The position numbers and the translations under genes were made by a program. A stretch of DNA of 64,000 nucleotides from Macrostomum lignano (lineage: Eukaryota). Under the pieces are notes generated by a model. It had not been told where the DNA came from and did not search any database. It saw only the letters and a program-made list of their open reading frames with translations. The DNA lies in the NCBI GenBank assembly GCA_002269645.1, contig NIVC01000042.1, positions 1 to 64,000 on the forward strand, read 5' to 3'. This document shows positions 1 through 63,329 of this stretch, in pieces (the stretch's first letter is position 1; every line of letters begins with the position of its first letter).

Positions 1-3000
1 CAATCTCACCCGATAATCGCAGCACGATAAACTCATATCAAAAGTTACCCAGATTCTGCAGCAATAATCCCAACTGCCATGAAAACCACCCCAGTGAGCA
101 GAGCAGCTCAGCGCCAAACGCGTCTGACTCGACCCTGGTTCGACTCCGTGAGTATAGCCCATTAATTTGAGGCTCGGCACGAAAAATTGAGACCGGGTTG
201 TTGTGACATTCACACCCATGAGTGCCAACCTCTTCGATGGCACGCCTTACGTGCGTGATTGGTTTAGATTGATTTGCACCCACTGTCCCAGCCGCGCTCG
301 AGATTTTGGACAATAAAAAACAGAACAGAAAAATTATCAATCAACTGCATGCCCTTCAAGACTTCTCCAAGAAGCTCCCCTCATCCAATTGACTTTCAAA
401 GAAGAAGCTTTGCAATGCAATCGAATCCAAGAACAGATTGCAGCTATGGGGCTTCTGGAAATCTTGTTTTCTTTTCTTGGAAATCCCTAAGTCTCGCTTT
501 CTACCCTCATTTCTCTCTTTCCCTTCTGACGCTTCATCAAGTTCACGGGGGCCTGGCATGAGGATCTAAGATTCCTTTGGGCTTCGAGCTTCTGGTCGCT
601 AATTGCTTGTTGCTGGCCTCCGATGCGCGGAGGGTTTCCAAGTCCATTCTGGCAGGCCGGCCGAAATCCCCCTCCACCTCTTCCTGTGTCCATCCCGGCT
701 TGCAATTCCCTCTGTTGAGTGACGCGTGAGCGACCTCCCCCCCACCCCCCAGGATTTTGGCACTTTCAGTCAGTCTACTGAAAGAGAGAATTGTTGAATC
801 GGGCGGCCCAACGCGAACACGTAGACCTGACAGAATCACACGCTTCCTTTCCAAGGGGAGCTTCTTTTTTCTCTCCGATGTTTCGCCTCAGCTCCCGTTT
901 CCATATCTGTTTAGTGCATTAAAGTTTCCCGCGGTGTTGATGCGTCTGGCAAACAAGGGCGATAAACAGTGCTTCAGAAATGAAGATAGAGAGGAAATAA
1001 TGGGGCCTACAGATGAAGAAACAGGTTGCAGAAATATAATAGCTGTACTTTGCTCATTTGTCAGAGCCGTGATAACGTTTCTTGTCTGCCAGATAACTAT
1101 AAAAGAAAGTTTTAGAAAATCTTTGGCTACTGTTATCAGCAAAAAACAACTTTCCAAGAGTAAATGTTTGAACTTTTTTTCGAATGGCATCCGCAGAGAG
1201 TCGAGTTAATGAAAAAGTCGAAGTAAGGCATCGCTTTTTAACTTTGTACGTAGAGCTAATTTAAATTGGATTGAAATGCACTTAGTGTACTCAATATCCG
1301 CCTTAAATTTTTATTGGTTCGAGGGTAGGAGAATTCAGGGGTGAGGGGCTACGACTCCGCATTCTCGACCTTAATTCTGATTGGCTGAAGCCACTCACAG
1401 GAGGGGTTGAAAATTTGGGGTGAGGGGCTGCGACTCCGCATTTCCGACCTTAATTCTGATTGGCTGAAGCCACTCACGGAGGGGTAGAAAATTTGGGGGT
1501 GAGGGCTACGACTCCACATTCCCGACCTTAATTCTGATTGGCTGAAGCCACTCACGGAGAGGTAGAGAAAATGGGAGTAAGGGGCTGCGACTCCGCATTG
1601 CTTATTTTATTGGCTGAAGCCTGAAGGCTCTACATATATTTTTTTAGGTCTGTTATTACACTAGTTTTCCGAAATTTCACTTAATTTATTTTCAATTTTC
1701 CACAGGCTCCTATCAGCGACTGTCGCTCATCTTTAGACTCCGCAGAAATGTTGGCTTCTTTGTATTCCAAACGTACCTGCCGTCCATTCTAATCGTTATG
1801 CTGTCCTGGGTGTCATTCTGGATTAATCACGAGGCAACTTCGGCTCGCGTAGCACTCGGTATGTACGCGTGCATCGCTACTCATGGCAGTAGTAGTATAG
1901 CAGTATAGCACTATTGGAGACGGTAGTTCTGGGCGTTTTCTGCTTGGATTTCTTGTAGAATGCATCGAATAGGAAGCATACGTAAATTGTATCCGTCGAA
2001 AACTGCATTCGAATCGAGCACATAGCCCTGGAAATTAGGCAGAAATAAGTAAGAGAAAAAAACCGCGGATAAAATCTTTATTATATCAGGAAATGTTTTA
2101 TTTAGCTGCTCTCATATCAAGGTAAACTACTCGTAGTTCGGGTTCCCAGCCGTTACATTTTATAATTTACCGATAAACGGCTTCTCCGTTACTATATTAC
2201 TACAGGCATCACCACCGTTCTCACCATGACTACAATCAGCACAGGCGTTCGTTCCTCCCTGCCTCGTATCAGCTACGTAAAAGCCATAGACATTTACCTG
2301 GTGATGTGTTTTGTGTTTGTGTTCGCCGCTCTGCTGGAGTACGCCATGGTGAATTACACTTATTGGGGCGCCAGGGCCAAGCGGAAGGCCAAACGGTTGA
2401 GAGACGCCAGCAGCGGAAATAACACACGAGGCAACTGCTCTGGAGACTTCATTGACAACTCGGTGAGGCCTCCTGCTAGGGATAAAAAATTCTCTGTTTA
2501 ACCGGCTTAGTTTTAGTAGTATTTTACGAGCTAGAAGTATTTGAGAGCTTAACTAGTTGGATTATAATTGGCTTGCGTACTTTTCTGGGTAGAGTAGAAT
2601 TTTCGAAACCAAAGCTTTGGGCTCTGATTGGCTGACAGGGAGTAGAAAAGAAGGTCTGAGTCAACGAGATGGGTTCTGATTGGCTGACATGGGGTATAGA
2701 GAACTTTTTTAGCCAATAAAGTCGGACTCGGATTGGCTGACCCTAAAGCAGCATTTTAGATCCTAGAAACGGTGTTTCTTATTGGTATAGCCAGATCGGC
2801 GTTCATATGGCTTTATCTGTCTGGTTTCAGAACACAGAGCTTTTTTAGTGCGTAGCCAAAACACCATGAGTGTCAAAATTAGGGCTCTAAAACCTTTTAA
2901 AGAAGGATTTAACTTAACGTAACCTCATCCGCATGCCTTAGTACTTTTCCTGTCAGCTAAGTTGTTCTCTGATTGTCTCCATCAAACTCCTCTCTGCAGC

Positions 3001-3581
3001 ACTCGGGCGTTGATCTGAACAATCAGCGCATGTCGCCGATAATTGGCCTACGAATTCGACGCTTGAATCAGCAGCTGCACCAGCAGCAGCAGCAGCAGCA
3101 AAGCGAAGACGAAAGCCGAGAAGAGGAGACCAGCATTCAGTCGTGCCCTCAGCAGCAGCAGCAGCAGCCGGAGCCGCCGCCTCCATCATCCGTGCCCGTC
3201 TACCCGATGAGTCCCCATGTGCCCTACATCAGCCGGCCGGGCTGCTACCTGGGCGCCAGTGGATCTGGTCTCGGCGGCAGCAGCGGCGGCAGCGGAGGCG
3301 TCGGCGGCGGCATTGCAGGCGTTGGTCGCAGCTACCTTCGCCAACGTCGCGTAACCGCTGGCAGCCTTGGTGGGGGCGGCTTCGACAGGCGGCATCAGCA
3401 CCAGCGAGCGGCTGCCGCGGTCATCGGGCAGCAGCTACGACAGCGGGCGTTGCAGATCCGGGCGCGAATGCCGCGCATCAAGGATGTGAACAAGATTGAC
3501 AAGTACTCCAGGCTGGCCTTCCCGTCGCTGTTCGTCCTGTTCAACCTGTGCTACTGGTGCTTCTACCTGCTCACCGGCTGA
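1..3581 (+). CDS. LCCH3: GABA-gated Cys-loop receptor beta-like subunit (LCCH3/GAB-1 type), 5'-partial. Exons 1706-1858, 2206-2462 and 3000-3581, plus a probable upstream exon <1-147.
   Basis: Spliced translation [105 protein letters not shown] is the M1-M3 region typical of LCCH3/GAB-1. The final exon ends with M4 ([25 protein letters not shown]). All junctions are GT-AG and phase-compatible. The M3-M4 loop has polyQ and polyG runs. Confidence 0.93.
150..1200 (-). mobile_element. Possible degenerate LINE endonuclease (EEP) fragment in an intron
   Basis: Minus-strand frames give [24 protein letters not shown]...[10 protein letters not shown] (like YRPP...GDFNA) and [12 protein letters not shown] (like PTRV...STLID). 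The frames are broken. Confidence 0.35.
1320..1620. repeat. Intronic tandem repeat, ~78-79 bp x ~4
   Basis: GACCTTAATTCTGATTGGCTGAAGCCACTCAC recurs at ~78-bp spacing. Confidence 0.85.
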
Positions 3582-4859: not shown

Positions 4860-7338
4860 CAGCGACAGACATCGATATAGCCTCGATGATAGGCTTCATA
4901 GAACTTGATACACATGTACTCGTAAATTTATTCAGAGCTAATTATGGCATGGATGTCAAGCCAAGATACAAGGCCAAGTGCAACTGCCAACTTCCGCGAC
5001 GAACTGACCAAGCCGATAGTATAGTTAAGACTGCTGCTGTCGGAGAGCTTTGAGTTGCCTCTACCTGCTTCTCAATGTGACTCTCTCGATGGAAGCAACG
5101 CGACACTCCGGTCTCTAATTGAACGCGTATCAGTGCTTTACCAGAGAGCTGAAGTGTTTTTAACGCCAACTTTGATTCATATGAACTGCGATTTACTCGT
5201 GCATTTCAGAAATGACGAACGAGACTTGGCTTGGTTCGGCCACATTCCATAAGATGACGTCACGGAGTCAGCGCGTCGCTTGCACAGTCGCTTCGCGGAG
5301 CACGAGTCGGACTTGGAGCTGTTGCCGCCATCGACATCCAGACGCGCTTTCACGGACGCCTTCATGTTTCGATGAATTGCTTCTTCAGTTTCAGCCGCTG
5401 TGAGGTTCAGGCACAGAGGGAGATGTCTAAACTCCCAGGTTGTAGGCTCAGGTGTCGGGCTGCAGTTGTACCTCTGCTGTCTGTCCCTCGCCATCTCCGA
5501 ATAGTAGCAGTGAGCCTCGCTGTAGCTGAACGCATCTGCGGCGCCGTTGTACGGGTTCAAGAACAGAACTGGGTCGTCGTGTTTCTCAACGCACTGGCCG
5601 GGAAAGTCCGCCGGTGTCATCTGGGCATCTTGCATTGCGATGGAGACGTCGTAGGCTCGACCGGGACCCAGGCTGATCACATTAGAGGTGAATCGAGACG
5701 GGTAGTGACCTCTGGGCGTCAGGTAGAGATACATTCCGCTGCCTTTATCGAACCCGATCGGATTCTCCAGGTTCCAGTCGAATGGATATAATGTTATCTG
5801 ATGACCAGATACGACAACAGACATTGTTGGAAGCCGGTCTGTATGGTTTGAAAACAGGCCAAGCTTATCGAAGTCAAAGAAGTAAGGATCGAGAAGCAGG
5901 TCGAGCTGCAATCTGTTGTTCGTATTCTGCATCCGAGATAACTCAGCATCGGTGAGGGCAAGCTTGAAGCACTTCAGATGGTTCGGGTGGAACAGCGTCT
6001 CTACCGCGATCGGGGAATTCAGACTGCGATCTGAGCCTGCACTGAAGATTCCGTAGTTTCCGTAGAATGTCTGCAGCTTTCTCTGACCCACAATGTCCGC
6101 CAGAGTTCTGTAGGGCAGAGACTGGATCAAGCTTGTTGGCCGAAGTTCGCGCAGTGTTGTGTTTTCACTCTCCGACGCATTCAGAGATCCGAGAGCGGCA
6201 TCGAATGCAGTCTGAGCAGCATCGACCGGTATGTTCACCTGGTCCGCCTCTGACCTGTTCAGTCGGTAGCAGGGGCGTCGCCATGGATTTTATGGTGGGG
6301 GGACAAAGCCAATAATTATACTAGTACGTGTACATGACAAAATTCTTACATGTACATTATTTTCAGAATCGGTGTTGTCAGCACTCATTTTGGCGCCGCA
6401 GGCATTCATTTTAGCGCCGCAGGCACTCATTTTAGCGCCGCAGGTTACTCATTTTGGCGCCGCAGCCACTCATTTTAGCGCCGCAGGCACTCATTTTAGC
6501 GCCGCAGGCACTCATTTTAGCGCCGCAGGCACTCATTTTAGCGCCGCAGGTTACTCATTTTGGCGCCGCAGCCACTCATTTTAGCGCCGCAGGCACTCAT
6601 TTTAGCGCCGCAGGCACTCATTTTAGCGCCGCAGGCACTCATTTTAGCGCCGCAAGCACTATGTATTGTCGCCCTGCAGAAAAATTATTGATTTCCATAA
6701 CGGTTCACAGGGTGGAGTGGGGGACAAAGAATTGGCCCCCCTGTCCCCCCCCCCCGTTGGCGACGCCGCTGGTCGGTAGATAAACGAGCCAGCGGCTTGG
6801 AGACTGTTGCAAAAGTAGACATCGGGAACTCGAATGGAACCTTTTCCGCTTGGAACTCTGACCTTACGCTCGGACTGTTCAGGCGTCGAATGTAGACGGT
6901 ACAGGTGTTTAGCAGAAGGCCCAGGAAGCTCAAGAATGCCAGAAGCCAGAAGATCCTCTGCACAACGGTCCTCTGCTTGCAGGGTCAATATGTTGTATTT
7001 TCTTCACAATGAAGAACTCGCGTGCGGTCAGATCAGTAACCGGAGAGTTTTCCCGCGTCAAATTAGTACCTCAGCTGTTTCCAGACTTGGCGTATGCGGA
7101 TACAGCTTTGCATCGAAGCTGAGGGAAGTATTTTGAGGGCACAGAAGCTCAGAATCCCAAAAGCCATGGATACAGATGATCCTCTGCACAACGGTGCGAC
7201 TTGCAGGGGCCTCACGGCCGATGGTGTGAGCTGTGTGCAGTGGTGTTCGCCACGGATTTTTTCACTATCCCGGACAGAGAGGCGCTGGGCGTCCATTCCC
7301 CGGCAATTTCTGGGGGGAGGCTTGATGACAGAGTACAA
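4860..7338 (-). pseudogene. Intronless DEG/ENaC (ASIC-like) channel pseudogene, or a disrupted allele
   Basis: NTTAH-like pre-M1 motif, TM1 QRIFWLLAFLSFLGLLL, FP/DVYFCN split by a 1-nt frameshift near 6825, a 353-aa Cys-rich ectodomain ORF (5177-6238), and TM2 remnants QFVAEVG and LALYLGLT in different frames. A MITE is inserted in the coding sequence. Confidence 0.85.
6270..6771. mobile_element. hAT-like MITE, 502 bp, with an internal 21-bp tandem array
   Basis: TIRs CAGGGGCGTCGCCA / TGGCGACGCCGCTG; perfect 8-bp TSD GTCGGTAG (6262-6269 and 6772-6779); internal ACTCATTTTAGCGCCGCAGGC repeats. Confidence 0.93.
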
Positions 7339-8862: not shown

Positions 8863-9051
8863 GCACGTTGCATATCCTCAATATAAGACAATATTTTAAT
8901 TTTTAATTATTAAAACTTGTCTCTTAGACATCGATATGTAAAAAGTCCTAGTTTTTAATATATTTTTTTAAAAGCCTGCTATCTTTAATATCAATACAAT
9001 TTGAGTTTTGTTTTACTTTGATCTTTGTTTAATATTTTGAGACTGAGAGGC

Positions 9052-11100
9052 CACCCGAGTGGCATCGATCTTATCGGGAGTAGATGTACCATTTTTTACC
9101 GATGTTATCGGGTTGAAAACATGGCGGGAATGTCGGCAACATGTCATCATCCCGATATAATCGGGGCATAATGCTTTTAAATTGAGCATGTTTTGCGTTT
9201 ATTTGAATTTCACGTTGCTAAATGTATAGAACTGGCCTAGCGTATTCATTTGCATAAAATATATATTATGCTTGTGCTTCATGTGTTTGAAACTTTACTC
9301 GAGGTCAAGGCTCCCCTCAGTGTGGAGAGTTTTTGTATACAGGCTACAGGTTTTTATAACTATGACAAATATTAATTAATGCTTTTACTTGGGTGCTTTT
9401 ACAAATTCATCACCATTTACTCTAACCAATAAAATATTAATATTATTAATGTTACCTAAGAGTGACAAACTGCAAAACTTCTTCAAGTTAGGCCTACCTA
9501 AAAATTGTTTGAAACCTTTAGACCAAAATAGGAAGAATTGATTTTAATTTATTGTCTATATATTTGATTATTTCTGCAAAGCCAAAATTATTAAATTCTT
9601 AAATTCTTCTAGACCTTATAGAAGACTTCTTTCCTTAATTTATATTAGGAAAACTTTTGAAATATTAATATGGTCATGGATTAACTTAACTATAGCTAAA
9701 AACTTTGAAAAGGAAGACAGAATAGGAGTCTAGACTATAGTCCTAGAAGGGGACAGATAGGGTATATCTATATTATATTGTCCTTTTATTGTCTATACTA
9801 CCAATATATTCCTTATCCTTATGCTAGGCTCCTACTCTCTATATCCCTATATCCTCCTTGCCTTCCTACTAGCCCCCTAACCTCTCCTAACCTCCTAAGG
9901 ATTCCCATATCCTTATTGCTCTCCTACTAGGCTTTTATCCTCTATACCTTCTATATATTTTTCCTTACCCTATTGCTAGGTTCTAATCCACCAAACACTA
10001 TGCCCTCATTATCCTCTATATCCTCCTTTCCCATCTACTGGGTCTTACCTTCTATAATATATATCCTCTTGACCTCTTATCCTCTTGCTGGCTCCTATCC
10101 TCCATATCCTCAATATCCTTCTCTTTTTACTAGGCTCCTACCCTCTATAGTCTATACCCTCCTTACCCTCCTTCCCCACCTGCTGGCTCCTACCTTCCAT
10201 ATCTTCTTATTCTCTTGCTAGGCTCCTACCCTCCATGCCTTCCATACCCTCTATGTCTCCTCCTAGGCTCCTTTCCTCTATGCCTTCCATGTCCTCCATG
10301 TCTCTACTCTCCTAGGCTCCTACCCTCCATGTCCTTCTTACCCTCCATACCCTCCATGCCCTCCATACCCTCCATGCCTCATAGGTTCTTACCCTCCATG
10401 CCCTCCATACCCTCTATGCCTCCTAGGCTCCTACCCTCCATGCCCTCTATACCCTCCATACCCTCCTTGTCCTCCTACCCTCTATACCCTCTTATCCTCC
10501 TGCTAGGCTCTTACCCTCCATGCCCTCCATACCCTCCATGCCTCCTCCTAGGCTCCTACCCTCCATGCCGTTCTTACCCTCCATACCCTCCATGCCTCCT
10601 AGGTTCTTACCCTCCATGCCCTCTATACCCTCCATGCCCTCCATACCCTCCATGCCCTTCTTACCCTCCATACCCTCTTACCCCCTCCTAGGCTCCTACC
10701 CTCCATGCCCTCCATACCCTCCATGCCTCCTCCTTGGCTCCTACCCTCCATACCCTCCATGCCTCCTCCTAGGCTCCTACCCTCCATGCCCTCCATACCC
10801 TCCATACCCTCTTACCACCCTGCTAGACTCCTACCCTCCATGCCCTCCATACCCTCCATGCCTCCTCTTAGGCTCCTACCCTCCATGCCCTCAATACCCT
10901 CCATACCCTCCTTGCCTCCTCCTAGAGTCCTAGGCTCCTATCCTCCATGCCCTCCATACCCTCCTTTCCCTCCTTGCCCTCCTTGCCCTCCTACCCTCCT
11001 TGCCCTCCTTACTCTCCTGCTAGCCTCCTACCCTCTATGCCTCTATCCTCCTTGCACCTGCCTTTCCCCCTACCCTCCATACCCCCCTCCATCTCCCCCG
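9052..11100. repeat. Left TIR of the KDZ element: ~730 bp AT-rich arm followed by a CCCTCCAT(A/G)/CTAGGCTCCTA pyrimidine-rich array
   Basis: Reverse complement of the right end. The predicted ORF 9973-10221(+) has the same translation as 23224-23472(-). Only small indels are visible, e.g. 6 bp near 9580. Confidence 0.92.
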
Positions 11101-11177
11101 GCCCCAACCCCCATATCCTTCATAGCCTCCTTGCCGCAGCTCTTTTATCTTACATGCTTCTATCCTATTTGTTCCAG

Positions 11178-14100
11178 GGTCGTCCGAGCAAGCGACTTAA
11201 AGTGTGCATTAATGGGCGCACTGTATATCTGCAGAGCATCAGAAAGCAATCTATAATTAGCGCCCTACCTCTTGCGCAGTCGCAACTCTCTGTTCCTAAT
11301 GCTACACGTGATGGTCCTTCCAGTCAGTCTGAATTTAGTCAGGATCCGACTTCTGAAATCCGTGAAGACTGCGACTGGGAGGCTCTGAATCCGAATTCAG
11401 AGCCAGACGTATTGGCGGCATTTATGCACTTCTTTAAGGATGGACGTGGACGGTGTGCTGAATGTTCGCAGGATGCCAACGTATACTGCCCACAGTGTGC
11501 GGATTATTTCTGCTCTGTTTGTGTTGACACTCGTCATCTTGGCCTTGTGCACACCATTCTTAAAGTAAGCCTTAATTTATGTTAAACGCTCTGACCACTT
11601 ATAGGAACGAGGGATGCAGAATGCGGAAAAATATACTTCTTATTTAGTGGCACATATCAGTTTTATCGTCAAGCTAATTACAATTCATCTACGGGCTATG
11701 CATAAAAGTAAGCAGGGTCTTATCCTTTAATGTCTATTTAAGGATGGAACTCCTCTAAATCAAGCTGTGACCCTAGCGTGCGGCTGCTCCGATGAAGCGG
11801 TGTTTGGAGACGTTCAGATTGTCGACGCCTATGGAGGTGAGATTGTAAAATCTATTTATACTTTTGTTATTACATTTTTGTTAGACCGAGCTCAAATCAA
11901 TGAACCAGTCACCTCTTAATTAATACAATTTAGGGTACCATACAGCCTGCTTGAAGTCTTGCACACTGCAGCACTATCGATCATTCCTTGTCAGCCGTGG
12001 TTTCTTTCCTGCTGCACCTACTAGTGCTACATTCATATCTTGTGAACTGCTACTTAACTTGGATTCTATTATGATAAATGGGATCACATCTTTGGACAAA
12101 GCTTGTGCGACTATACAAAATCGCCGATTAGCTTTTGGGCAGCATCCGCAGGTATGCTTGTGCAGTACTTATTGGTAATTGAAAGTAGTGAGTTTTATTT
12201 ATGTTCTCTGCAGTATAATCCGTTATTGTATATACTTAAGGTGTTAGGTTCCCATTATTTGAGATATCATCAGCGTCAATCCGAATTTTTCAGCGAGATC
12301 TCTATTACGATTTGAAACGCTATAACACTATTGGCTACTTTCGACAGTTCATGTCGTCCATTGTAAAGTTTCCAACAAGCTGCGCAATGTGTACGACGGG
12401 CGATTTGGTGAGAGCTTATTCAGATTTTGCAATGTGTGCTATGCTACTTAACTATTTTTAGTATCCTTGAGGTTAATTTTTAATATTCCAACTATCTCAA
12501 ACTATGTGCATAATTGTTTTTCCTTTTCAGGGCCCAATCCTGCACGGAGATGCCCTGATGGGCTGGAAACATCGAGCCTCAGTTGCACCTGGCTTGGCCT
12601 CTGTGCCTATTGGTGATCTTCCTTTTCCGTTTGCGCATGTCGATGTCGCATCTGAAAATATTGCGCCTGCGAGCGGTGCGTGTCCAAACTGGACAGCAGG
12701 CGAAACGTCTCGCATTACTACGAGTTCTAGGAAGCTGGACGTAACAGGCTTTTTCATCGTAGCCTGTCGCCACGGTTTCATTTGGGCCTGCTCTGATGTG
12801 CGCACTCCCGGAGAGCAGTAAGACTTTTTATTCGACTCATGCATTTATTTTTCATTTTTGCTCCGTTGTCCTTATTTAAAAATGAAACTTGGCAACACAT
12901 CTTTAGGCTTGTCTACCCTGTCAAGCTCCTTAAAGCCGCTGTGCAGCGCATCGGTGTACCAGAAGAAGCTGTGACATTTGTCTATGATGTCGCATGCAAA
13001 CTCGGCAACAAAGTCACTTCGAAGTTGGCCGTACCAGTTTTTCATGCATACGGTCACGAGTCTAAGTGTCGCGTGAGTCTTTACCATTTTACTCATAGCA
13101 TTTTGTGGGCATTATTTTGTGTTCATAGCTTTAATCAGCCCCAAATAATTTAAAAGAGCTTTTCATGTTAGTCGGTGTTGTCATTTTGCGGGCTTCTCAG
13201 TTTAGTTCTGAATAAATTTTTAATAAATTTTTTCCTCTCAGCTCAACAACTCCATCCGCGTCGTGTCTGGCACTGGTATCACAGACGGAGAAATCTGCGA
13301 GCGCATATTCTCCTTTCTGCGTCCTTTCGGGCGAATCTTGAAAGAAATGCGCATTGACCGTCGTACACGGCTTGTCTCACACATTATTAACATGTATCAT
13401 CTGCGTCTTAACCCGGGTGCGCATCAAGCTTTCAGTCAAAATAAGAATAGCTGATTTTTCATAAGGTTTTAAGTTTCTAGCTAACATTCACATTTTATTA
13501 CTGTAGATGCATGGATAAAGTCACGACAGAAGCTTCTGGAGAAGAAGGATCAGCTCGTCATTCAACATGTTAATGAAATAAATCGACTTCAGCCCCGGCA
13601 CGGTAAGTGATTTTTCTTTCAATATCCTCCCATCAGCATACTCGAAAATTCAGTTTTTTCTACCTACGTTTTTTGCATTACAGAGCTTAGTCTTCAACAA
13701 TTAATTTCACTGGGAGAAAAATGGCTTTGCGAAGATGCAATCGCTTCCGCTCTGCGGTCAGGAGATTGGCTCCAAAGCATGCGTCGAATGGTGGTCGAAG
13801 AACGGAAAGTTCTCAAAGAGCTTCATCGAACAATTGGTGTGTAAGCTCCTATTGGAACATAAACATCTTCCTTTGAAAGGAAAGAAATTAAATTTGAATA
13901 CAAAGAGATAGTATAATAGTCCTTTATTGAAGATAAAGGATAGTATTCTTGCTATCCTATTTGAAATCCCCTCAATGACCCACATGACCCCCCTCCCAGC
14001 TGGCGTGACCCTCCAGACCAAAATCTTGCTACGCCACTGACAGGTATGAGATATGAAGTAGCAAAGTAAGAAAACAGTTAATAAAATCACTTGCTCGATT

Positions 14101-14511
14101 GCCCGATAACGTATCAGCTATCTTCACAAGTAGGCCACATTATTTCCATTGCATTTACCAGGCATCCATCAGTATCGACTGCTGTTGCGCAAGGCCAAGA
14201 AGCTGGCACTGGAGATGAATCAACTTCGGTCTCTCAACGGAAACCAGTATTCAATAGCAACGCTTCGAGACACGACTTCGGAAGCATACTCACGATTGGA
14301 CCGCCACGTCAGCCGCCGGTTTCCAATTCCTGTCCAGCTTTTGGTCATTGAGGTTTACATCCTTTCCATTCGTTCTACCGAGGAGCGCCGTCGAGTCAAT
14401 GCTGAGCAGAGCAGCCTGATGACCAAAACCGAAAGCGTTTGTGACTTCCCAGAATACTTCAGTGAAAGCTCCTCTAGCTTCTCTGGTGTATCCGATTCCG
14501 AAGACGAGTAG
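11178..14511 (+). CDS. KDZ transposase, ~680 aa. Exons 11178-11564, 11743-11836, 11934-12151, 12294-12407, 12531-12817, 12907-13072, 13242-13416, 13507-13602, 13684-13836, 14162-14511.
   Basis: B-box-like CAECSQDANVYCPQCADYFCSVCVDTRHLGLVH; CxC-type GYHTACLKSC...RGFFPAAP...ELLL; CAMC; core motifs LHGDA, KLDVTGFFIVACRHG...PGEQ, FVYDVAC, VPVFHAYGHESKC, GTGITDGEICERIFSFL. All ten junctions are phase-consistent (2040 nt) with no internal stop. Confidence 0.88.
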
Positions 14512-17500
14512 GATTTTTCCGATTGTAGCCATGAACTGTGGCAAATGAGAAACTCAATGCAATGACTTTATGAAGTCTAAATTGTTCTAAATTATTTGTA
14601 TGCTCTTGAAGTAAAGTACATGTAATACTAGCGTATGCTTTGTTGTAAATGCAAAGCAAATGCCGTTTTCTGTACCTTAATGCGTGTGTGATTGTACTGC
14701 CACTCATGCATATTTAGTTAAAGTTAGCCTTAGTCCTAGTACTTGTATTTCCTGTAACTTCTGTATTTGAAGTTACATTACTTATATTAGCTTCTGCTTC
14801 GCAAGCAAGTCATACAAATGTATACAAATTTGCGAGTGTGTATAATGTATTTGCTTAAAATTTGATATAGAAGTGTGTTTTGTCAAATACAAATTGTACA
14901 TGTGCGTCACTCTAAATTGATTGGTTTAAGGTTGTACATTAAGCGAGAAAGTTAAATCCTGCTTATTTTTTGCTTGCTTCTTTACTTCGCAATGCTGTTT
15001 CAGGTGAGTAGCTAAATTTTGGGGCTTGAATCGAAACAATCACTCACAGAATTATGGAATCAATCCTGGAATCGATGGAATGTACACCAGCTGCCAGAGA
15101 CAGCAAGAAGCGATGCAAGAGATAAGAGTTGAGCCGATTCAATTGCCTGGGTGGCTCGTCCCGTAACTACGAATGAGTTAAGTTGCCTGCAGTCCGGTGC
15201 AAGGAAAGTGGAAAGAATTGAAGAAATGATTGGCGGAGAGGTGGCTGGGGTTGTGCAGATTGGGCCGGGTCTTTTGGAGGATTAGTGTGGATTTCCGTGA
15301 GGGGTATAAGGGCAAGTTTGCAAAGCTGCCGCTTCGGCGCTATGCGCGCCATTCTGCCGCCGCTTGCGTCGGCTGATAGGGCAATAGTTGAAGTGTCATT
15401 TGGCGCTTGCGGCGCGCTGATAGCTGCATCCGTTATGTTGGACCAGCATGCCAAGTCAAACGTAATAATCGCCTCACTCCATTCAAAGCGATCTATTTTG
15501 TGTTTCAGACTCGGACTTTAATGGACATGGCTTCCACATTATCCCAGAGTGCGGGACGTCAAATCCCGCCAAGATCTGTCCGGATTAAGGGGCATTCAGA
15601 AATCACTTTTGCACCTGGTGGTGCTCCAAATATGCAAGTCTATATAGACAGGCTTAGTTTAGTCCAACTTTGTCAGGCTGCCATTGAAGAACCGCTTGGC
15701 CTAGACAGGTGCGACTTGCGCACTCACTGGTGCACTATATAGTCCAGATTGTCCCGGTTTTAATCTTCAGGTACAGCTTAGTCTTGCATCCTGTAATTTC
15801 CAGCTGTCAATCTACATGTATATGTACATCTACACCTCTTACCCGCCGAAGACGCGTCCACGAAGTCTACCCACAGGGGGTCCCGTGCACACCGGCAACC
15901 AGCCCACCCTACACCCCCCGATCGGTCTTGCGAAATGAGTGGTACCGTTGTGGACGTCAGTGCCTTCGCTAAGGTAACTGAGCGCGGTCTGCATGGCTAG
16001 CAATAGCAGCGGTACATCCTGGCCAAGGACTTCATCACCGACTCCTCTGGTCGTGCAAGCAATAGGCTCCGGTTGAGCCTTGTCTGCCTTCGACTGCAAC
16101 GACTCCGACTGCGACTCACCTCCGGTCTCGCGCCCGCAACCGGCGCTTCCGGCCTCGCCCGCCAGTTTTCTGCGCACTTGGCATCGCCCTCCAAACGCCT
16201 CTTGCGCTAGCCTGCAACCTCGCGCACCATGTATTTCTGACTGTGCTGTCGCACCCGCCAATGCCTGGCCAATCTACACACCTGCCAGTGATACCCCGGG
16301 CATCGAGGCTGCGGTTGGCCAACGCGCTTTAAAATCTAGATTTAAGATTGAGGTTTGCAGATGAGGTTTGATTTCTAGATCTAGAAATCCTAATTTACTG
16401 TATCCACATTCTTCCTACTGGGGATCACAAAATCGTAGAGAGATGGGATTTTTGATGACTCTACACTCGTTGCCCGTGAAGTGACTGAAAATGACAATGA
16501 TTTTCTATCAATGCGATATCCAACAATGCGTCCCGTATTATGCATCTCAAGCAACATTTTATCCTCTGGCATTATTGGAAGGTTGACTGGAATGCATGAT
16601 TTAACTTTTCAATAGGATAGGCTTGCATTATTCGTTGGGACGCTGGGTCTAATGGGATGCGTTCTTTATGTTTTAAAAGGAGTTTTCGGACTGGAAGTGA
16701 CCTGCCCCCTCCTTTTCCTTCGCTTTTGCCCTCTTGTACACTTTTGCCTTCTGCCTATTACACTTAGGAAAGTTTTAATTACCCTTTGAACATTCTTTCC
16801 CTGAGATCAAGGACAACCCAAGTCTGAGACATCTACCCAGTCTACCGTGAGTATCTAAGTCCATCGTAACTGTTTGTCAGTTACTCCTTAGCACTACAAG
16901 GTTCACATACCAGTCCTAAAATATCTTGGGACTACAAGGGTTTTAGTTAACATCTTACACCGCATTATCTTACACCGCTTGTTAGACCATCACGTGTTTG
17001 CATTATTAAATAAATTGTAAGCTTGACACCATCAAGAGATTGACACCATCAGGAACGAAGGTCGTACCCTTTTCTAGATTCATTTGTGCCCATAGGATTA
17101 GGGGCACTGGTCAATAGGTGCCCAGTCGAGATACGGCACAGACCATAAAACGTATATTTCAGTGATTTCACCCGTCCAAATCACGCTTAAGCTCACATCC
17201 TTCACATTCTTACTCTTACAACCCGGTTGGTGAACTGGATGACTGGAGTCTCTTTGTGACGGAGCAATATCCGCAGAATTGAACTCCTTACAATAATAGA
17301 ATCATTATAAAAAGCCAACCCCACCCATCAATAGCAACTTCATGCCCTGTAACAATAACTTTGCATTTCAACAAAATTATGTTACGTGTATTATAGCAAC
17401 TTCTGAGGAAATATCGTTTGATCAAGCCTTATATCGAACTACTCGTACTTTAAATTTTCAAATAGAGCTGCACCGGTTAATTTTTCAGAATCTTTTTCAA

Positions 17501-18719
17501 CGGCATAATTAATTTTCTTGCAGCTCAAATTAAATACATTTATCAGGGGCACAAATTGACCGGAAATTTACATGATTTTACTTTGCACTTTGCCTGTCCC
17601 TAGCCCGATGCGCAATTGTGAGTTAAATCAGGCTCAATATCATTCTTGCTGCAACATCAACAGACAGGCTCACAGTATTGGACCGAACTGAAAAAGCACT
17701 ATCCGGCCTTTTTCGCCGTACAAACAAGAATTTTTATGCTCTAAAGTACGAGTAGATTACTATTACCAGTCCCATCGGGCAAATGACACGCGCAGTTCCT
17801 TCAGTGCCCAACTGTGAGGACAGGCGCGAACTCGGCTCTTCGTTGACTGACTGCAGGCGGCGCGGCCTTCACCCGTGACCATGCAGGTCTCAAGGCATGC
17901 CCCGAGATGCTGCACCAAGGACCTTGACAACTTGCTTTTCTATTCTGTTAAGACTGCAGTTCATTTGGAGAAGTGGACACTTAACACCCAGTGCATCTGT
18001 GCACACGTGGACATGCAGACTATGCATGTTTGATATGGTATGGTACATGTATAGCTCAACAAACGTTGATTTTTAACTTGTCTTATAAAGTGTCTTCTAA
18101 AAGAGAATTTAACCTCTTTTTCGTTTCTCCCAATTTTTTTATTTCCATATACGAATATCCAAGCTGCCGGATCGAGTGAAAAGAAGTGGAAAACAAAAAT
18201 ATCTGAAATAAAGTGAACACATTCTCAAAAGATGGAACAACCGGCCATAAGGAGTAAAATTGCATATCTTGACCTAGAAATGAACTAACAGATTTTATTT
18301 AATAACAATTTGGTGCAGGAAATTGGGGCGCAAGTATAAAGTGCAACACGCACTATAACTACATGCGTCTTGAAAAAATAGCTGCCAAAATGATTGCGAA
18401 ATTCCAGGCACAAAAATAACTGCAGGGATAATTTGCTGTCTTTTGCTGTTTTGCACAAGCGTCTTCAAAATCGACAATCTGAAATTAACAACTGACAACC
18501 AACGTTCTATCGGGTGTGGGGTGTCCAAGAAGGGCCACACTTTGTGCGCAAACTCTGGTCTTAAAAATGATTACTTTCTGCAATTTTTTCAGAATTCATT
18601 AAACTGTCTTCTCCAATACGGGATAACATTTGAAACCTGCTCAATGTGATGTTCCGATCCTGACACCTGGCTTTTAAGATTTATTTAACTGGAACTAAAT
18701 AAATCAAACAAAATAAGCA

Positions 18720-21543
18720 TCAGAAAACCACTTCGACGTCGTCGGTGCTGAACCCAGCCTTTGTACTGGACGTCGAAACAGTGATGGTCGGAATGCCGAC
18801 AGATGGCGTCACAGTGGCCGGTTTCGCTCGCAAAGCGGCTCGATTTGCCCGCACAGCAGTCGGCGGATTCGGCACGATCGGCGGATTCAGCACGGTCGGT
18901 GGATTCGGCACGGTACGCGGATTCAGCACGGTCGGCGGATTCGGCACGATCGGCGGATTCGGCACGGTACGCGGATTCAGCACGGTCGGCGGATTCGGCA
19001 CGATCGGCGGATTCGGCACGGTACGCGGATTCGGCACGGTCGGCGGATTCGGCACGGTACGCGGATTCAGCACGGTCGGCGGATTCGGCACGATCGGCGG
19101 ATTCGGCACGGTCGGCGGATTCGGCACGGTCGGCGGATTCGGCACGGTACGCGGATTCAGCACGGTCGGCGGATTCGGCACGATCGGCGGATTCGGCACG
19201 GTACGCGGATTCAGCACGGTCGGCGGATTCGGCACGATCGGCGGATTCGGCACGGTACGCGGATTCAGCACGGTCGGCGGATTCGGCACGGTCGGCGGAT
19301 TCGGCACGGTACGCGGATTCAGCACGGTCGGCGGATTCGGCACGGTCGGCGGATTCGGCACGGTACGCGGATTCAGCACGGTCGGCGGATTCGGCACGAT
19401 CGGCGGATTTGGCACGGTACGCGGATTCAGCACGGTCGGCGGATTCGGCACGGTACGCGGATTCAGCACGGTCGGCGGATTCGGCACGGTCGGCGGATTC
19501 GGCACGGTCGGCGGATTCGGCACGGTCGGCGGATTCGGCACGGTCGGCGGATTCGGCACGGTCGGCGGATTCGGCACGGTCGGCGGATTCGGCACGATCG
19601 GCGGATTCGGCACGGTCGGCGGATTCGGCACGATCGGCGGATTCGGCACGGTACGCGGATTCAGCACGGTCGGCGGATTCGGCACGGTCGGCGGATTCGG
19701 CACGGTCGGCGGATTCGGCACGGTCGGCGGATTCGGCACGGTCGGCGGATTCGGCACGGTCGGCGGATTCGGCACGGTCGGCGGATTCGGCACGGTCGGC
19801 GGATTCAGCACGGTCGGCGGATTCGGCACAGAAAAATCGAGTGTCATGGATTCACTCTCGTCCTGAGCGTGTTCTGCTGTGCCGCCAGAAGCCTGCACAT
19901 TGTGATCATTGTCTTCCTGACCATTTTCATGCCCTGGAAGGAACACTAGGTCGAGGCGTGTGTCGTATGCTCGACGCAAAGCTAGTCCTTTTAGCTTTGA
20001 TGGGTTGCTTAGATGAGGTCGAAATACCCCCTGAAGTTGGCGATAATTTACTTTCGCACCCATTCCGGCCTTCACTAAAACGGGGCAGGGAGTAAGGAGA
20101 AAGTGTTTTAATTGAATTGTACTTTGCATAAAAGTTTAACATAATTTTTTGCATAAAACTTTAGCTATTAAGAACATTACGAACTTTGCCATAATTTCAG
20201 GATTCGTAATCATGCTGTTTGATCCAGGTACTAAAAATTCATTTTCATTAATTTTCAAAAAATTAAACTAACTGTATGCGGCTCTTGCTTCAGCTCGGAC
20301 TTCTTTTCGCATTTCGTCAACAGTAGGCTTCCTGGTAGACACGCCATTGCCAGAAGGCTCTTGGGATGAGAGCAGTTCAAACTGCTGCAAGGAAAGGCGT
20401 AGAAAATAATTCAGGGTAATTTTACCAAAATTGTACTCTGTAATTCAATACAAAAAACCAAGATTTTATAATAAATATTATGTAATTTAAGGCATCTTAC
20501 CTGGAGAAGGCCATTCGCGTCGTTAGAGTGCAGTAATGGCAGCACTTCGGGTGATGCGCATGATTTTGTGTTCCTGCCATTACGTCGCTTCACAATAAGC
20601 AGCACATGGTGGTCCTTGAAGAGAGACCGAGCCTAAAAATAAAGTTAACATGCTACACGTAAGAAGTCATCGTCCCTCTAGAAATCAGCGGAAGCCTTCA
20701 AAGAAGGAGAAGCCAGGGGAAACACATGGGCGTAGCCAGGATTTCTGATTGGGGGGACGCACGGAAGAGGCGACAATGGGGCGCTAAAATAGCGCCAACT
20801 GGGCGCTAAAATAGCGCCAAATAGGCGCTAAAGGGCGTCAAATCGGCGCCAAAGGGCACTAAATGGGTTCAAAATGAGCACTTAAGCTGCTCCCCAGGGG
20901 CGCGGCCCCCCTTAGCTGCCTTGCCCACCCTCCCGGGCCCCCTCAGCGGCCCCACCCCCCAGGCGATTGGGGGGCCGCGGCCCCCCGCCCCCTGGCTACG
21001 CCACTGGGGGAACATGGGGTGGGAAATTTGACACGCGCCCGCTCCCACTACGACAAGCAACAAATGATCAATGATTTTCAGTGCAGTGTATGCAGTTTGA
21101 TTCATTTTTACTGGCTAAAAAGAAGAAATTTATATGACACTGCAATTTATAACAAACCATTCGATCCAGATCTGCGACAGACGGACCGCTCCTCTGTTCG
21201 TTGGCAATACTTGCGTAATTAGCTTTTTCCTCATCAGTAAGACCATTGTAGTAAGCTTTTAGCCGATTTATGTGTTCCGCTGAGAAATTGCCTAAAGTAA
21301 CGAAAGGAATGATATTAATAAGTTTTACTACGTAGACGTAGATTACGTATCTAATGTTCACTCTCACACACGCACGATGTACATTTAATTTGCGTGACAA
21401 ATGCAATGCAACATTTTCCTGACACAGGCACGCTTATCCTATAGGAAAGCCAAAAAGAGAGAAGGAACCTTACGTGTGCCATGTATCTTATACACCCCAG
21501 ACCAGGCGCTGACCTTACGCTGCTGGAACACCTTCTTCGTCAT
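18720..21543 (-). CDS. Second gene of the KDZ element: HMG-box-like N-terminus plus Pro-rich PNPPTV repeat, ~620 aa. Exons 21543-21474, 21291-21158, 21114-21052, 20632-20501, 20384-20273, 20074-18720.
   Basis: Spliced MTKKVFQQRKVSAWSGVYKIHGTRNFSAEHINRLKAYYNGLTDEEKANYASIANEQR resembles an HMG box (helix-3-like LTDEEKANY). Junction phases are consistent (1866 nt). The 3' end could splice further. Confidence 0.62.
18860..19830. repeat. 18-bp coding minisatellite (CGGCGGATTCGGCACGGT), ~50+ copies
   Basis: In-frame PNPPTV/LNPRTV/PNPPIV repeats on the minus strand; open in three frames. Confidence 0.95.
20725..21006. mobile_element. hAT-like MITE nested in an intron of the KDZ second gene
   Basis: Ends CATGGGCGTAGCCAGG / CCTGGCTACGCCACTG; TSD GGGAAACA / GGGGAACA (7 of 8 match). 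Confidence 0.85.
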
Positions 21544-21859
21544 CTGAAATTGTTTGCAAATATGCTACCAATTTCTAAATAGAGCCGATGGAGTACCATC
21601 ACATAGAGGGTACAAGGTGGGGAAATATAGCATTTTGCAGTCAAGTTTGAACAACAGGCAGTCAAGTTAGACGCTAGTGAAGCCGACCGAGTTAAAAAAG
21701 CAAAAACTACCTATGGTCACAGAAAAAAATCACATTAACTGGCAATCAAGTTAGACAGAAAGCACTCAATCCAGACACCAATTGCTTGTTGAAACCTAAT
21801 ACACGGATGACTTTGAACATTCAACAACCTAGCAATTTCAGACACAAGATCACCACGCG

Positions 21860-24396
21860 GACAAGCCAAGCTTGTACGATTATAGCAAGTATAGCAAGAA
21901 GGGTACAGAGGGTATGGTAGGTAGAAGCCTACCAGCATGGAAGGACGAAATAGAGAGTAGGATCCTAGCAGGCAAGTAAAAGGGTATTGAAGGTATGGAG
22001 GGTACAGCGAGTAGGAGCCTAGCAGGCGGGGAAAGAGGGTACAAAGAGTGGGAGCCACGGGCTCCGAGCCAGCAGGAGGGCAAGGAGGGAATGGGAGATA
22101 GAAACCTAGCAGGCGGGGAAGGGGTGTAAGGAGGGTAAGGATGGCACGTAGTGTAGGAGCCTAGTAGGAGGGCAAGGAGGGTATGGAGGGTTGGAGGTAG
22201 GAGGACAAGGAGGGTATGGAGGGTTGGAGGTAGGAGGACAAGGAGGGTATGGAGGGTTGGAGGTAGGAGGACAAGGAGGATATGGAGGGTAGGAGGACAA
22301 GGAGGGTATGGAGGGCATGGAGGATAGGAGCCTAGGAGGAGGGTAAGAGGGTATGGAGGGCATGGAGGGTAGGAGTCTAGCAAGTCTAGCAGGGAGGTAA
22401 GAGAATATGGAGGGTAGGAGGGCAAAGAGGGTACGGAGGGTAGGAGGGCTAAGAGGGTATGGAGGGTAGGAGGGCAAGGAGGGCAAGGAGGGTATGGAGG
22501 GTATGGAGGGCATGGAGGGTAGGAGCCTAGGAGGAGGCATGGAGGGTATGGAGGGTAGGAGCCTAGGAGGGGGTAAGAGAGTATGGAGGGTAGGAGGACT
22601 AGGAGGGTATGGAGGGTAGGAGGGCAAGGAGGGTATGGAGGGCATGGAGGGTAGGAGCCTAGGAGGAGGCATGGAGGGTATGGAGGGCATGGAGGGTAAG
22701 AGCCTAGCAGGAAGATAAGAGGGCATGGAGGGTAAGAACCTAGGAGGCATGGAGGGTATGGAGGGTAAGAACGGCATGGAGGGTAGGAGCCTAGGAGGAG
22801 GCATGGAGGGTATGGAGGGCATGGAGGGTAAGAGCCTAGCAGGAGGATGAGGGTATGGAGGGCATGGAGGGTAAGAGCCTAGCAGGAGGATAAGAGGGTA
22901 TAGAGGGTAGGAGGACAAGGAGGGTATGGAGGGTATAGAGGGCATGGAGGGTATGGAGGGCATGGATGGTAGGAGACTAGGAGGCATGGAGGGTATAGAG
23001 GGCATGGAGGGTAGGAGCCTAGGAGGCATAGAGGGTATGGAGGGCATGGAGGGTAAGAACCTATGAGGCATGGAGGGTATGGAGGGCATGGAGGGTATGG
23101 AGGGTAAGAAGGACATGGAGGGTAGGAGCCTAGGAGAGTAGAGACATGGAGGACATGGAAGGCATAGAGGAAAGGAGCCTAGGAGGAGACATAGAGGGTA
23201 TGGAAGGCATGGAGGGTAGGAGCCTAGCAAGAGAATAAGAAGATATGGAAGGTAGGAGCCAGCAGGTGGGGAAGGAGGGTAAGGAGGGTATAGACTATAG
23301 AGGGTAGGAGCCTAGTAAAAAGAGAAGGATATTGAGGATATGGAGGATAGGAGCCAGCAAGAGGATAAGAGGTCAAGAGGATATATATTATAGAAGGTAA
23401 GACCCAGTAGATGGGAAAGGAGGATATAGAGGATAATGAGGGCATAGTGTTTGGTGGATTAGAACCTAGCAATAGGGTAAGGAAAAATATATAGAAGGTA
23501 TAGAGGATAAAAGCCTAGTAGGAGAGCAATAAGGATATGGGAATCCTTAGGAGGTTAGGAGAGGTTAGGGGGCTAGTAGGAAGGCAAGGAAGGCAAGGAG
23601 GATATAGGGATATAGAGAGTAGGAGCCTAGCATAAGGATAAGGAATATATTGGTAGTATAGACAATAAAAGGACAATATAATATAGATATACCCTATCTG
23701 TCCCCTTCTAGGACTATAGTCTAGACTCCTATTCTGTCTTCCTTTTCAAAGTTTTTAGCTATAGTTAAGTTAATCCATGACCATATTAATATTTCAAAAG
23801 TTTTCCTAATATAAATTAAGGAAAGAAGTCTTCTATAAGGTCTAGAAGAATTTAAGAATTTAATAATTTTGCAGAAATAATCAAATATATAGACAATAAA
23901 TTAAAATCAATTCTTCCTATTTTGGTCTAAAGGTTTCAAACAATTTTTAGGTAGGCCTAACTTGAAGAAGTTTTGCAGTTTGTCACTCTTAGGTAACATT
24001 AATAATATTAATATTTTATTGGTTAGAGTAAATGGTGATGAATTTGTAAAAGCACCCAAGTAAAAGCATTAATTAATATTTGTCATAGTTATAAAAACCT
24101 GTAGCCTGTATACAAAAACTCTCCACACTGAGGGGAGCCTTGACCTCGAGTAAAGTTTCAAACACATGAAGCACAAGCATAATATATATTTTATGCAAAT
24201 GAATACGCTAGGCCAGTTCTATACATTTAGCAACGTGAAATTCAAATAAACGCAAAACATGCTCAATTTAAAAGCATTATGCCCCGATTATATCGGGATG
24301 ATGACATGTTGCCGACATTCCCGCCATGTTTTCAACCCGATAACATCGGTAAAAAATGGTACATCTACTCCCGATAAGATCGATGCCACTCGGGTG
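21860..24396. repeat. Right TIR of the KDZ element (GGAGGGTAT/GGAGGGCAT purine-rich array plus AT-rich arm)
   Basis: Reverse complement of 9052-~11100, with a longer array than the left copy. Confidence 0.92.
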
Positions 24397-24816
24397 GAGA
24401 GGCTCTTCATAATTGCTTGTTCTGGTTCTAGAACAGAACCAATTTGTAAAGTATAACTTTTTGTCTCCTAAACTAGGGGGATATCAGTGCTTTAAAATTG
24501 TGATTATTGAATGGCAATAGCCAAGAAGAAAATGAGAAATCGTGCAAAGTGAGGCTGTTAAGGCAGTCAAACATTCAACAAAGTTAAATAGTTATACTGC
24601 TTTTTTTTCTTGGAAATCCAAACCGATTCTGGTTCGAGAATCGATGCCGTGACTTGAGGCTCTGACTGACTGACTGACTGACTGGAAGTAAGAAGTCTGA
24701 TCCAAGACCGGCGGCTGAGTCACGGTCACAAATAAATCTCAAAATTTAAATGACTTACTTTTACCATACCCATGTGTTCTATAAATGTAACCACTAATTT
24801 TTGTGTTTTGTAAATG

Positions 24817-33500: not shown

Positions 33501-33798
33501 CAATTGGATGCTTGCTATCTGGGGGTTCTTTCTATCTGGGGTGCTTGCTATATGAGGGATGCTTGCTATCTGGGGGTGCTTGCTATCTGGGGGTGCTTGC
33601 TATCTGAGGGTACTTGCTATCTGGGGGGGGGGGGGAGGGGGATGCTTGCTGTCTTGGGATGTTTTATTTTTGCATTGTGCTTCATTTGAGCAGTTTTTCT
33701 GTTGTCTTTGTGAAGACTCTATTTGGCTGTCTTTTTGTTACTTGTAGAGAACAGAAGTTCTATCCAGATGTCCCCCATCGGGGGGCGAAGATTGCTAG
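30517..33798 (+). mobile_element. Non-autonomous Helitron, copy 1, carrying a 23-bp satellite
   Basis: A|TCCTATATACTAAAAATG 5' end; GGCTCAACCGATTTTCTTC motif; 3' hairpin CCCCCATCGGGGG followed by GATTGCTAG. Confidence 0.8.
31100..33350. repeat. 23-bp satellite (AAAGAGCCACCATGTCAAACATT, variant ATATACGTGACTCCATGTCAAAC)
   Basis: Direct tandem array. Confidence 0.95.
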
Positions 33799-63248: not shown

Positions 63249-63329
63249 GTGCGACAGGAGCTCCGGTATCCCGTGCCATCCCTGGTCCCTTATCTCCCCA
63301 GGCTATTCTCACAACCCATCCCCATCCCT

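Follow-up and report, generated by a model that had tools for sequence, protein, structure and literature searches.

Macrostomum lignano is a laboratory flatworm and a regeneration model. A 64,000-bp stretch of its genome (positions 1 to 64,000 of the forward strand of contig NIVC01000042.1, assembly GCA_002269645.1; hereafter, the window) holds a 15,345-bp DNA transposon of the KDZ superfamily at 9052-24396, in which long terminal inverted repeats (TIRs) enclose two convergent genes: a plus-strand transposase gene and a minus-strand gene that we refer to as the second gene (Table 1). Such an element had been proposed in an earlier note made from the sequence of the window alone, which we followed up computationally. 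The annotated locus that we label L005 (NIVC01000042.1:1178-24511) is the window's own and is identical to it over the full element. The superfamily comprises Kyakuja, Dileera and Zisupton, with target-site duplications (TSDs) of 8 bp in Zisupton and Dileera and of 7 bp, with CA..TG termini, in Kyakuja (PMC12730594).

Inverted ends and transposase gene

From 9052 the left end reads CACCCGAGTGGC..., and the reverse complement of the same sequence closes the element at 24396; the terminal 27-mer matches the window only at these two ends, against a chance expectation of zero. A gapped alignment of the arms (9052-10535 against 24396-22850) contains no substitutions over 1,484 bp and three indels (6 bp extra on the left, 9 bp and 60 bp extra on the right), which bears out the near-identical inverted ends of more than 1.4 kb described at the outset. 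Beyond this perfect part, BLAST extends the homology, at ~90%, through degenerate 9-bp arrays to 11131/22265, for a total of ~2.1 kb. The sequence GAGAGGC stands directly outside both ends, as the earlier note had read it, and is exactly 7 bp long, the eighth base pair not matching.

Close to the termini, the 13-bp near-palindrome CGATNTWATCGGG occurs in three copies within ~110 bp of each end, and intervals of the same size hold six of the nine window matches to TATCGGG. Further in, the arms carry complementary 9-bp arrays and so show strong GC skews of opposite sign. On the G-rich strand of these arrays (GGAGGGTATGGAGGGCATGGAGGG...; 10218-11131 and 22111-23128), which is the template strand for both genes, a GGG run recurs every ~9 nt, giving the arrays a predicted potential to form G-quadruplexes.

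The candidate start codon of the transposase (ATG, 11154) lies 23 bp inward of the point where left-arm homology stops, in agreement with the description of a plus-strand transposase starting just inside the left TIR. Our model is residue for residue the same as two annotated products, P0001 (100% identity) and P0030, the latter a 5'-partial sequence of 679 amino acids (aa) spanning 11178-14511; a candidate microexon at 12214-12240 was rejected, as annotated P0001 joins exon 3 straight to 12294. A search with hidden Markov models confirms the proposed assignment to KDZ: the Pfam KDZ profile (PF18758) scores 110.5 bits against a cut-off of 26.6 (E = 1.3e-31; profile positions 42-213), with three separate exons matching consecutive parts of the profile. 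When the protein is aligned with fungal KDZ proteins, the motifs LHGD, ACRH, PGE, YDVAC, HAYGH..C and TDGE..ER are all present, and across 15 fungal sequences conservation is complete or exceeds 90% at D286, D402, E447, E450, C358, H360, the H421-H425 block (HAYGH) and C429.

A B-box-like zinc finger at residues 100-135 gave a weak Pfam match; Pfam found no SWIM, CxC4 or Peptidase_C48 domain in the 687-aa transposase or in its nearest animal relatives, and no MULE domain in the transposase. Its predicted structure has a mean predicted local distance difference test (pLDDT) score of 48.5, and the top Foldseek neighbours of this weak model all have an RNase H fold (the Mos1 transposase, the Argonaute PIWI domain and the HIV integrase core), none of them being significant; because the models of this protein and of the second-gene protein are too weak for firm fold assignment, we take both Foldseek lists as weak hints at most.

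Table 1 Features of the KDZ element and of the surrounding window (positions are those of the window)
Feature	Position	Strand	Remarks
Left TSD copy, GAGAGGC	9045-9051	none	read off sequence; same as 24397-24403
Left inverted repeat, perfect part, 1,484 bp	9052-10535	+	0 mismatches, 3 indels against 24396-22850
Terminal 18-bp motif, CACCCGAGTGGCATCGAT	9052-9069	+	mirrored at 24379-24396; common to family-1 and family-2 copies
Three subterminal 13-bp near-palindromes, CGATNTWATCGGG	9066-9165	+	starts 9066, 9100, 9153; repeat search; mirrored in right end
Left array, degenerate 9-bp units, CTCCATACC	10218-11131	+	C-rich on + strand; tandem-repeat search; GC skew -0.45; inner limit of arm homology
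KDZ transposase gene, 10 exons, 687 aa	11154-14511	+	all introns GT-AG; frame uninterrupted
Transposase exons 1-5	11154-11564, 11743-11836, 11934-12151, 12294-12407, 12531-12817	+	
Transposase exons 6-10	12907-13072, 13242-13416, 13507-13602, 13684-13836, 14162-14511	+	
Spacer between convergent genes	14512-18719	none	no recognisable coding content
Second gene, 5 exons, 600 aa	18720-21543 (ATG 21543)	-	splice model; annotated 600-aa product on L005 at identical coordinates
Second-gene exons	21543-21474, 21291-21158, 20632-20501, 20384-20273, 20074-18720	-	
Coding 18-bp minisatellite, 53.9 units, (PNPPTV)n	18859-19829	-	tandem-repeat search; last exon of second gene
Right array, 9-bp units, AGGAGGGTA	22111-23128	+	G-rich on + strand; tandem-repeat search; GC skew +0.63
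Right inverted repeat, perfect part	22850-24396	-	9 + 60 bp extra relative to left; gapped arm alignment
Right TSD copy, GAGAGGC	24397-24403	none	read off sequence
Host gene fragment, neurotransmitter-gated channel	2973-3581	+	
Host gene fragment, amiloride-sensitive sodium channel	5177-6238	-	
Host gene fragment, LicD	58084-59073	+	
Host gene fragment, GDA1/CD39 nucleoside phosphatase	62754-63761	+	

Further copies, duplication lengths and age

Further loci were gathered from cluster members of the annotated proteins, a route that covers few loci. Family 1, to which the window copy belongs, has at least four (the window; L006 and L001, which are one locus on two contigs; L007; and L008), and family 2, whose transposase is 65% identical to that of family 1, has at least three (L002+L009, L003+L004 and L010). 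Every copy in both families starts with the 18 bp CACCCGAGTGGCATCGAT, after which the families diverge. Because this motif is common to both and the sequence diverges immediately inside it, it can be read as the functional terminus, and it is probably the end that the transposase recognises and cleaves. Copies of family 2 measure 18.9 kb (L002+L009), 23.7 kb (L003+L004) and 15.6 kb (L010), and in the largest ~4.8 kb are duplicated internally, the 3' part of the transposase gene among them; the family-2 arms, of ~3.3 kb, hold 94 copies of a 34-bp unit in an array unrelated to that of family 1.

The same architecture, with duplications of its own, stands on other contigs (L006, L010, L002+L009 and L003+L004), so the inverted arms are not the assembly artefact that the earlier note had considered they might be. 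Five insertions entered our comparison of TSDs, L007 and L008 being left out because their right ends lie beyond the sequence covered and both diverge from the element inside the second gene. Besides GAGAGGC (7 bp) in the window, the duplications are AATAATCG (8 bp) at L006/L001, GGTGGCGC (8 bp) at L003+L004, GTTTTCGG (8 bp) at L002+L009 and CAATAAA (7 bp), which abuts an A-run, at L010. Ends and duplications are thus consistent among copies, at five insertions out of five, and these independent insertions are evidence that the element has been mobile. Since three of them carry 8 bp, this lineage, to judge from these junctions, mostly makes 8-bp duplications, and the 7 bp of the window copy is no lineage trait and not diagnostic; the contrast with Zisupton that had been built on it falls away, both lengths being already known in KDZ (PMC12730594). 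The assembly, made from long reads, shows 1-bp indels between copies, such as a G missing from the right terminus of L001. With 7-8-bp duplications at all five insertions, and with every other defining feature that was tested apart from the CxC module, the element is a member of the KDZ superfamily.

At the left junction of one family-2 copy (L003:4898-4921, on NIVC01000038.1), the target site holds a solitary 12-bp copy of the right terminus, GCCACTCGGGTG, the last 4 nt of which belong to the GGTGGCGC duplication, making a perfect 26-bp palindrome; this may be the footprint of an earlier element or may mark re-insertion at a former donor site.

Five mismatches (~0.05%) separate the window copy from L006 over a unique interior of ~9.7 kb, and the window differs from L007 and L008 by ~0.5-0.7%; the outer 1 kb of the arms has 0-5 differing sites between copies and none within a copy. 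As the copies differ by so little (0.05-0.7%), gene conversion was rejected as a requirement for arm identity. All exons of both genes are intact and identical in the window and L006, both of which encode the same 679-aa P0030, and the L001 allele has a 10-bp deletion in transposase exon 3. With identical arms, copies that are 99.3-99.95% identical and both genes intact at two loci, the element is young, as had been proposed, and it is probably active, activity being judged from sequence integrity and low divergence; the pattern fits a young family of few members, some of them autonomous. Another element, 1.3 kb long, is nested within L001 (11612-12912, corresponding to window position ~13680), where it has landed precisely on the acceptor of transposase intron 9; its inverted ends measure ~30 bp (CGGGTGTCCGGATTGAACGGAAACGCTGC), and it is bordered by a duplication of TAC.

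The second gene, a proposed mechanism and rival explanations

Convergent with the transposase gene, the second gene starts ~0.7 kb inside the right-arm homology, which makes its placement 'just inside' the right TIR in the earlier note approximate. Its protein has a weakly HMG-box-like N-terminus, a conserved middle and a repeat tail. On comparative evidence, it is a real gene, because its exons are kept in family 2 (where, by tblastx, almost nothing else outside the transposase gene is conserved), because its exon junctions and phases recur in P0025, an annotated protein of family 2, because a third family has a homologue (P0027) and because the 600-aa model is annotated at the same coordinates. 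Proteins from the three families are 47-49% identical over ~200 residues. The tail is encoded by a minisatellite that is always in frame, with 54 units in the window, 17 in L001, 17 in L006, 11 in L007 and 7 in L008, among copies otherwise more than 99% identical; in family 2 this place is taken by a 45-bp (15-aa) repeat of unrelated sequence. The 4.2-kb spacer between the two genes yielded no third gene, with no Pfam match for its 10 longest open frames and no tblastx conservation with family 2, and no RNA gene, with no Rfam family and no tRNA.

We consider it very probable that the element is an autonomous cut-and-paste KDZ DNA transposon, and that the window holds one of few nearly identical copies. 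In the mechanism that we propose, a transposase with an RNase H-like core bearing D286, D402 and E447/E450 (DDE/D-type) would recognise the 18-bp CACCCGAGTGGCATCGAT and nearby CGATNTWATCGGG motifs, and the whole 15.3-kb unit would be excised and re-inserted through a staggered cut, which would mostly be 8 bp wide and would at times read as 7 bp. Because each gene begins beside one arm and transcription is convergent, the arms would probably supply putative promoters for both genes. The second-gene protein would most likely act as an element-specific DNA-binding or architectural accessory, pairing or regulating the long repeat-rich ends, a role comparable to that of the Myb-like second protein of PIF/Harbinger or of HMGB1 in the RAG and Sleeping Beauty reactions. 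The likeness is one of role, that of a separate protein which binds or bends DNA and so aids the transposase at the ends; the PIF/Harbinger partner is Myb/SANT-like and HMGB1 is a host protein, and neither has sequence kinship with the second gene.

Several results weigh against this reading. The start codon of the transposase is uncertain, with the frame open upstream into the array, and the protein gave no Pfam CxC match, even at E ≤ 10 on the isolated region. Half of the four family-1 loci are damaged, L007 by frameshifts in transposase exons 7 and 9 together with a truncated second gene, and L008 by truncation of the second gene; the data examined showed neither a transposition event nor an excision footprint nor an empty allele. 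An accessory function for the second gene is something we infer. Searches for a homologue of this gene beyond M. lignano came back empty, Pfam gave no match at all for the window protein (none to HMG even at E ≤ 10), a profile search against PDB sequences returned chance matches alone and no HMG protein, and Foldseek found nothing significant, and no HMG match, for the predicted model.

Evidence on the HMG-like character of the second gene is mixed. The family-2 N-terminus matches Pfam HMG_box_2 (E = 0.0038; 18.3 bits, cut-off 22.4) and HMG_box (E = 0.01; 16.7 bits, cut-off 25.4), below threshold and in the expected register, and hhalign of the second gene against an HMG-box set gave a probability of 40.7% (P = 2.9e-4), with helices 2-3 aligned in the correct register. 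In the predicted structure, three helices occupy residues 13-54 (pLDDT 66-85; whole-model mean 61.8), and UniRef names P0026 and P0027 'HMG box domain-containing protein'. The HMG-like character that the earlier note had given the gene thus stands as a reasonable lead, weakly supported. A MADS-box reading, which goes back to UniRef names of exon-skipped family-1 models, was rejected (hhalign probability 0.3%; no Pfam SRF-TF match); MEF2, SRF and SEP3 top the Foldseek list for the second gene, at non-significant E-values above 0.5.

A bolder version of the proposal, which we hold to be rather doubtful, is a two-component KDZ system, of a kind so far undescribed in the superfamily, in which the transposase would work with a required architectural protein, built of a divergent HMG-like head and a hypervariable tail, that binds the terminal arrays, so that protein repeats and arrays would co-diversify; units of 6 aa go with 9-bp arrays in family 1, and units of 15 aa with 34-bp arrays in family 2.

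It is possible, if on balance unlikely, that the second gene is instead a passenger, a self-regulatory gene (for anti-silencing or copy-number control, of which VANDAL Mutator elements give an example) or a DNA-binding gene captured from the host and carried along. Its position, orientation, exon structure and ~47% protein identity have been kept while the transposases diverged to 65%, and the protein is kept in a third family; conservation across families on this scale points to a function tied to the element, and no host paralogue outside these elements turned up. Yet the gene has no significant match to any curated family, and its tail differs wholly between families (6-aa against 15-aa units) and ranges from 7 to 54 units among near-identical copies, variability that one would sooner expect of a fast-evolving regulatory or interaction protein than of a cofactor for an enzyme. 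Extra genes of unclear role occur in fungal KDZ elements, too (PMC11343200).

That the window copy is a recent but no longer mobile relic, its near-identity to other copies stemming from redundant haplotigs in the assembly or from duplication, of segments or of the whole set, in the partly polyploid genome of M. lignano, seems to us improbable. Although L001 and L006 are one locus on two contigs, so that the assembly does hold duplicated loci, and although just a handful of loci were retrieved, the window, L006, L007 and L008 have unrelated flanks, and the duplications of the window and L006 differ from each other, as do those of the three family-2 insertions, an outcome that transposition yields and duplication does not; the difference of ~0.05% between the window and L006 also tells against a relic. 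Hardly credible is a composite, in which two independent foldback-type repeats in inverted orientation bracket a KDZ gene and a neighbour gene, for while the arms are mostly tandem repeats and the window is rich in other kilobase minisatellite arrays (including the inverted pair 40206-40654 / 42756-43095), the whole 15.3-kb unit, with the unique outer 1 kb of both arms, recurs elsewhere with duplications directly outside its termini, and its 18-bp terminus is common to a sister family with unrelated 34-bp arrays.

Relatives, known systems and significance

An exhaustive profile-free search returned 761 relatives. Those nearest after family 2 belong to at least five further KDZ lineages of M. 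lignano, with identities of 29-35%, and for some of these lineages dozens of gene copies are annotated. They are followed by uncharacterised proteins of the priapulid Priapulus caudatus (XP_014669631), the sea urchin Lytechinus variegatus (XP_041481377) and the amphioxus Branchiostoma lanceolatum (XP_066271123), which are about 30-34% identical over most of the protein (E ~1e-26) and are laid out as B-box-like + CxC1/CxC2 + KDZ; the KDZ proteins of fungi lie further away (E ~1e-13). The CxC...LVxxGxFPxxP block of the flatworm transposase aligns with the fungal consensus, and the nearest animal relatives have CxC1/CxC2 at that position; its domain architecture may be read as B-box-like + CxC1/2-type + KDZ, the CxC part being without a Pfam match in the window protein.

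Multi-exon Zisupton relatives are known from several animal phyla, and KDZ/Zisupton elements from many metazoans (PMC9297572), so that the view of KDZ as a matter mainly of fungi and fish Zisupton, from which the earlier note started, has to be given up. Since the nearest non-flatworm relatives also share its domain layout, the flatworm lineage is no isolated animal oddity. In L011, a distant M. lignano lineage, the transposase gene is immediately preceded by a 3.5-kb tandem array, and the 10 kb downstream of the gene yielded no second-gene homologue; because of this array and the arrayed arms of family 2, kilobase array-type ends seem to be a habit of these flatworm elements.

With the KDZ superfamily (filed as 'Zisupton' in Repbase) the element shares the KDZ domain and motifs, CA...TG termini and 7-8-bp duplications, and with animal Zisupton relatives a multi-exon transposase gene (PMC9297572). 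It resembles Kyakuja in its CA..TG termini and in the 7 bp duplicated at two of five insertions, but has kilobase TIRs where characterised Kyakuja have none. Its transposase is without the CxC4 + SWIM layout of Zisupton proper (PMC11343200), and the 8-bp duplication of the latter (PMC12730594) compares with 7 bp in the window copy and 8 bp at three of five related insertions. Cryptococcus KDZ1 (10.9 kb, with a 236-bp TIR, an 8-bp TSD and extra genes of unclear role; PMC11343200) is similar in its large size and extra genes, whereas the flatworm ends span 1.5-3.3 kb, largely as tandem arrays, against 236 bp. The element differs further from the known KDZ systems in its flatworm host, in an N-terminal B-box-like finger with no SWIM, CxC4 or Ulp1 protease module, and in a conserved convergent second gene, which contains a coding minisatellite and whose product is weakly HMG-box-like at its N-terminus. 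An Ulp1-type protease is present in some Zisupton members.

Outside the superfamily, the comparison with maize MuDR suggested by the earlier note holds for design, with two convergent genes that each start beside one long TIR, and fails for kinship: MuDR has a MULE transposase, to which ours is unrelated, a 9-bp duplication, TIRs of ~0.2 kb without arrays and a mudrB gene dissimilar to the second gene, and its TIR promoters have been shown, whereas those of the flatworm arms are putative. Membership of MuDR/Mutator is ruled out by the KDZ transposase and by duplications of 7-8 bp as against 9-11 bp; CACTA/EnSpm is likewise ruled out, for although the termini begin with CAC, the duplication is 7-8 bp (against 3 bp) and the transposase is KDZ. 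In Drosophila FB and in Galileo (P superfamily), kilobase inverted ends consist largely of short tandem repeats and the transposase superfamily is different or unknown; our element is like these foldback-type elements in its kilobase repeat-rich inverted ends and unlike them in transposase superfamily.

Around the element, long arrays are a general feature of the region. The KDZ element lies in AT-rich sequence (~30% GC) between host gene fragments (Table 1). The arrays at 40206-40654 and 42756-43095, ~2 kb apart, have mutually reverse-complementary units (...GACCGT... / ...ACGGTC...) and form another foldback-like structure, and further minisatellite arrays of 1-2.4 kb, with units of 20-39 bp and some of them paired, occur at 31100-36864, 44407-45830, 53558-57883 and 61845-64000. 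At 49546-51631, a mariner-type transposase frame (49831-50949; Pfam HTH_48, Transposase_1 and DDE_3) is flanked by arrays of 33/34-bp units (49546-49703 and 51015-51631).

In public databases, P0002, P0003, P0021-P0024, P0026, P0027 and P0029 are labelled 'B box-type', 'MADS-box', 'HMG box' or 'Secreted protein', and one such entry is a 2,138-aa 'protein kinase domain-containing' fusion model. These names are likely to be annotation artefacts of transposon genes; for annotation, it follows that M. lignano database proteins called 'hypothetical', 'B box-type', 'HMG box' or 'MADS-box' are products of transposon genes.

No published description of this flatworm family, of array-type ends of 1.5-3.3 kb or of the convergent second gene was found in the literature searched, in keeping with the expectation that the element was probably undescribed; family, ends and second gene appear to be new, the superfamily is known and no categorically new system is involved. 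KDZ elements rank among the least studied DNA transposons of eukaryotes, Zisupton alone being well characterised with ends and duplications according to a 2025 survey (PMC12730594), and direct evidence that they move comes from the fungus Cryptococcus alone (PMC11343200). The finding is of moderate interest for transposon specialists and useful to the flatworm community. It provides an animal KDZ element that is complete and seems functional, with precisely placed termini, a conserved 18-bp end motif, a clean transposase model and a conserved second gene, as a substrate for the biochemistry of KDZ transposition and for testing whether long array ends need an element-encoded DNA-binding partner, and in M. 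lignano itself the element may serve as an endogenous vector for mutagenesis or transgenesis.

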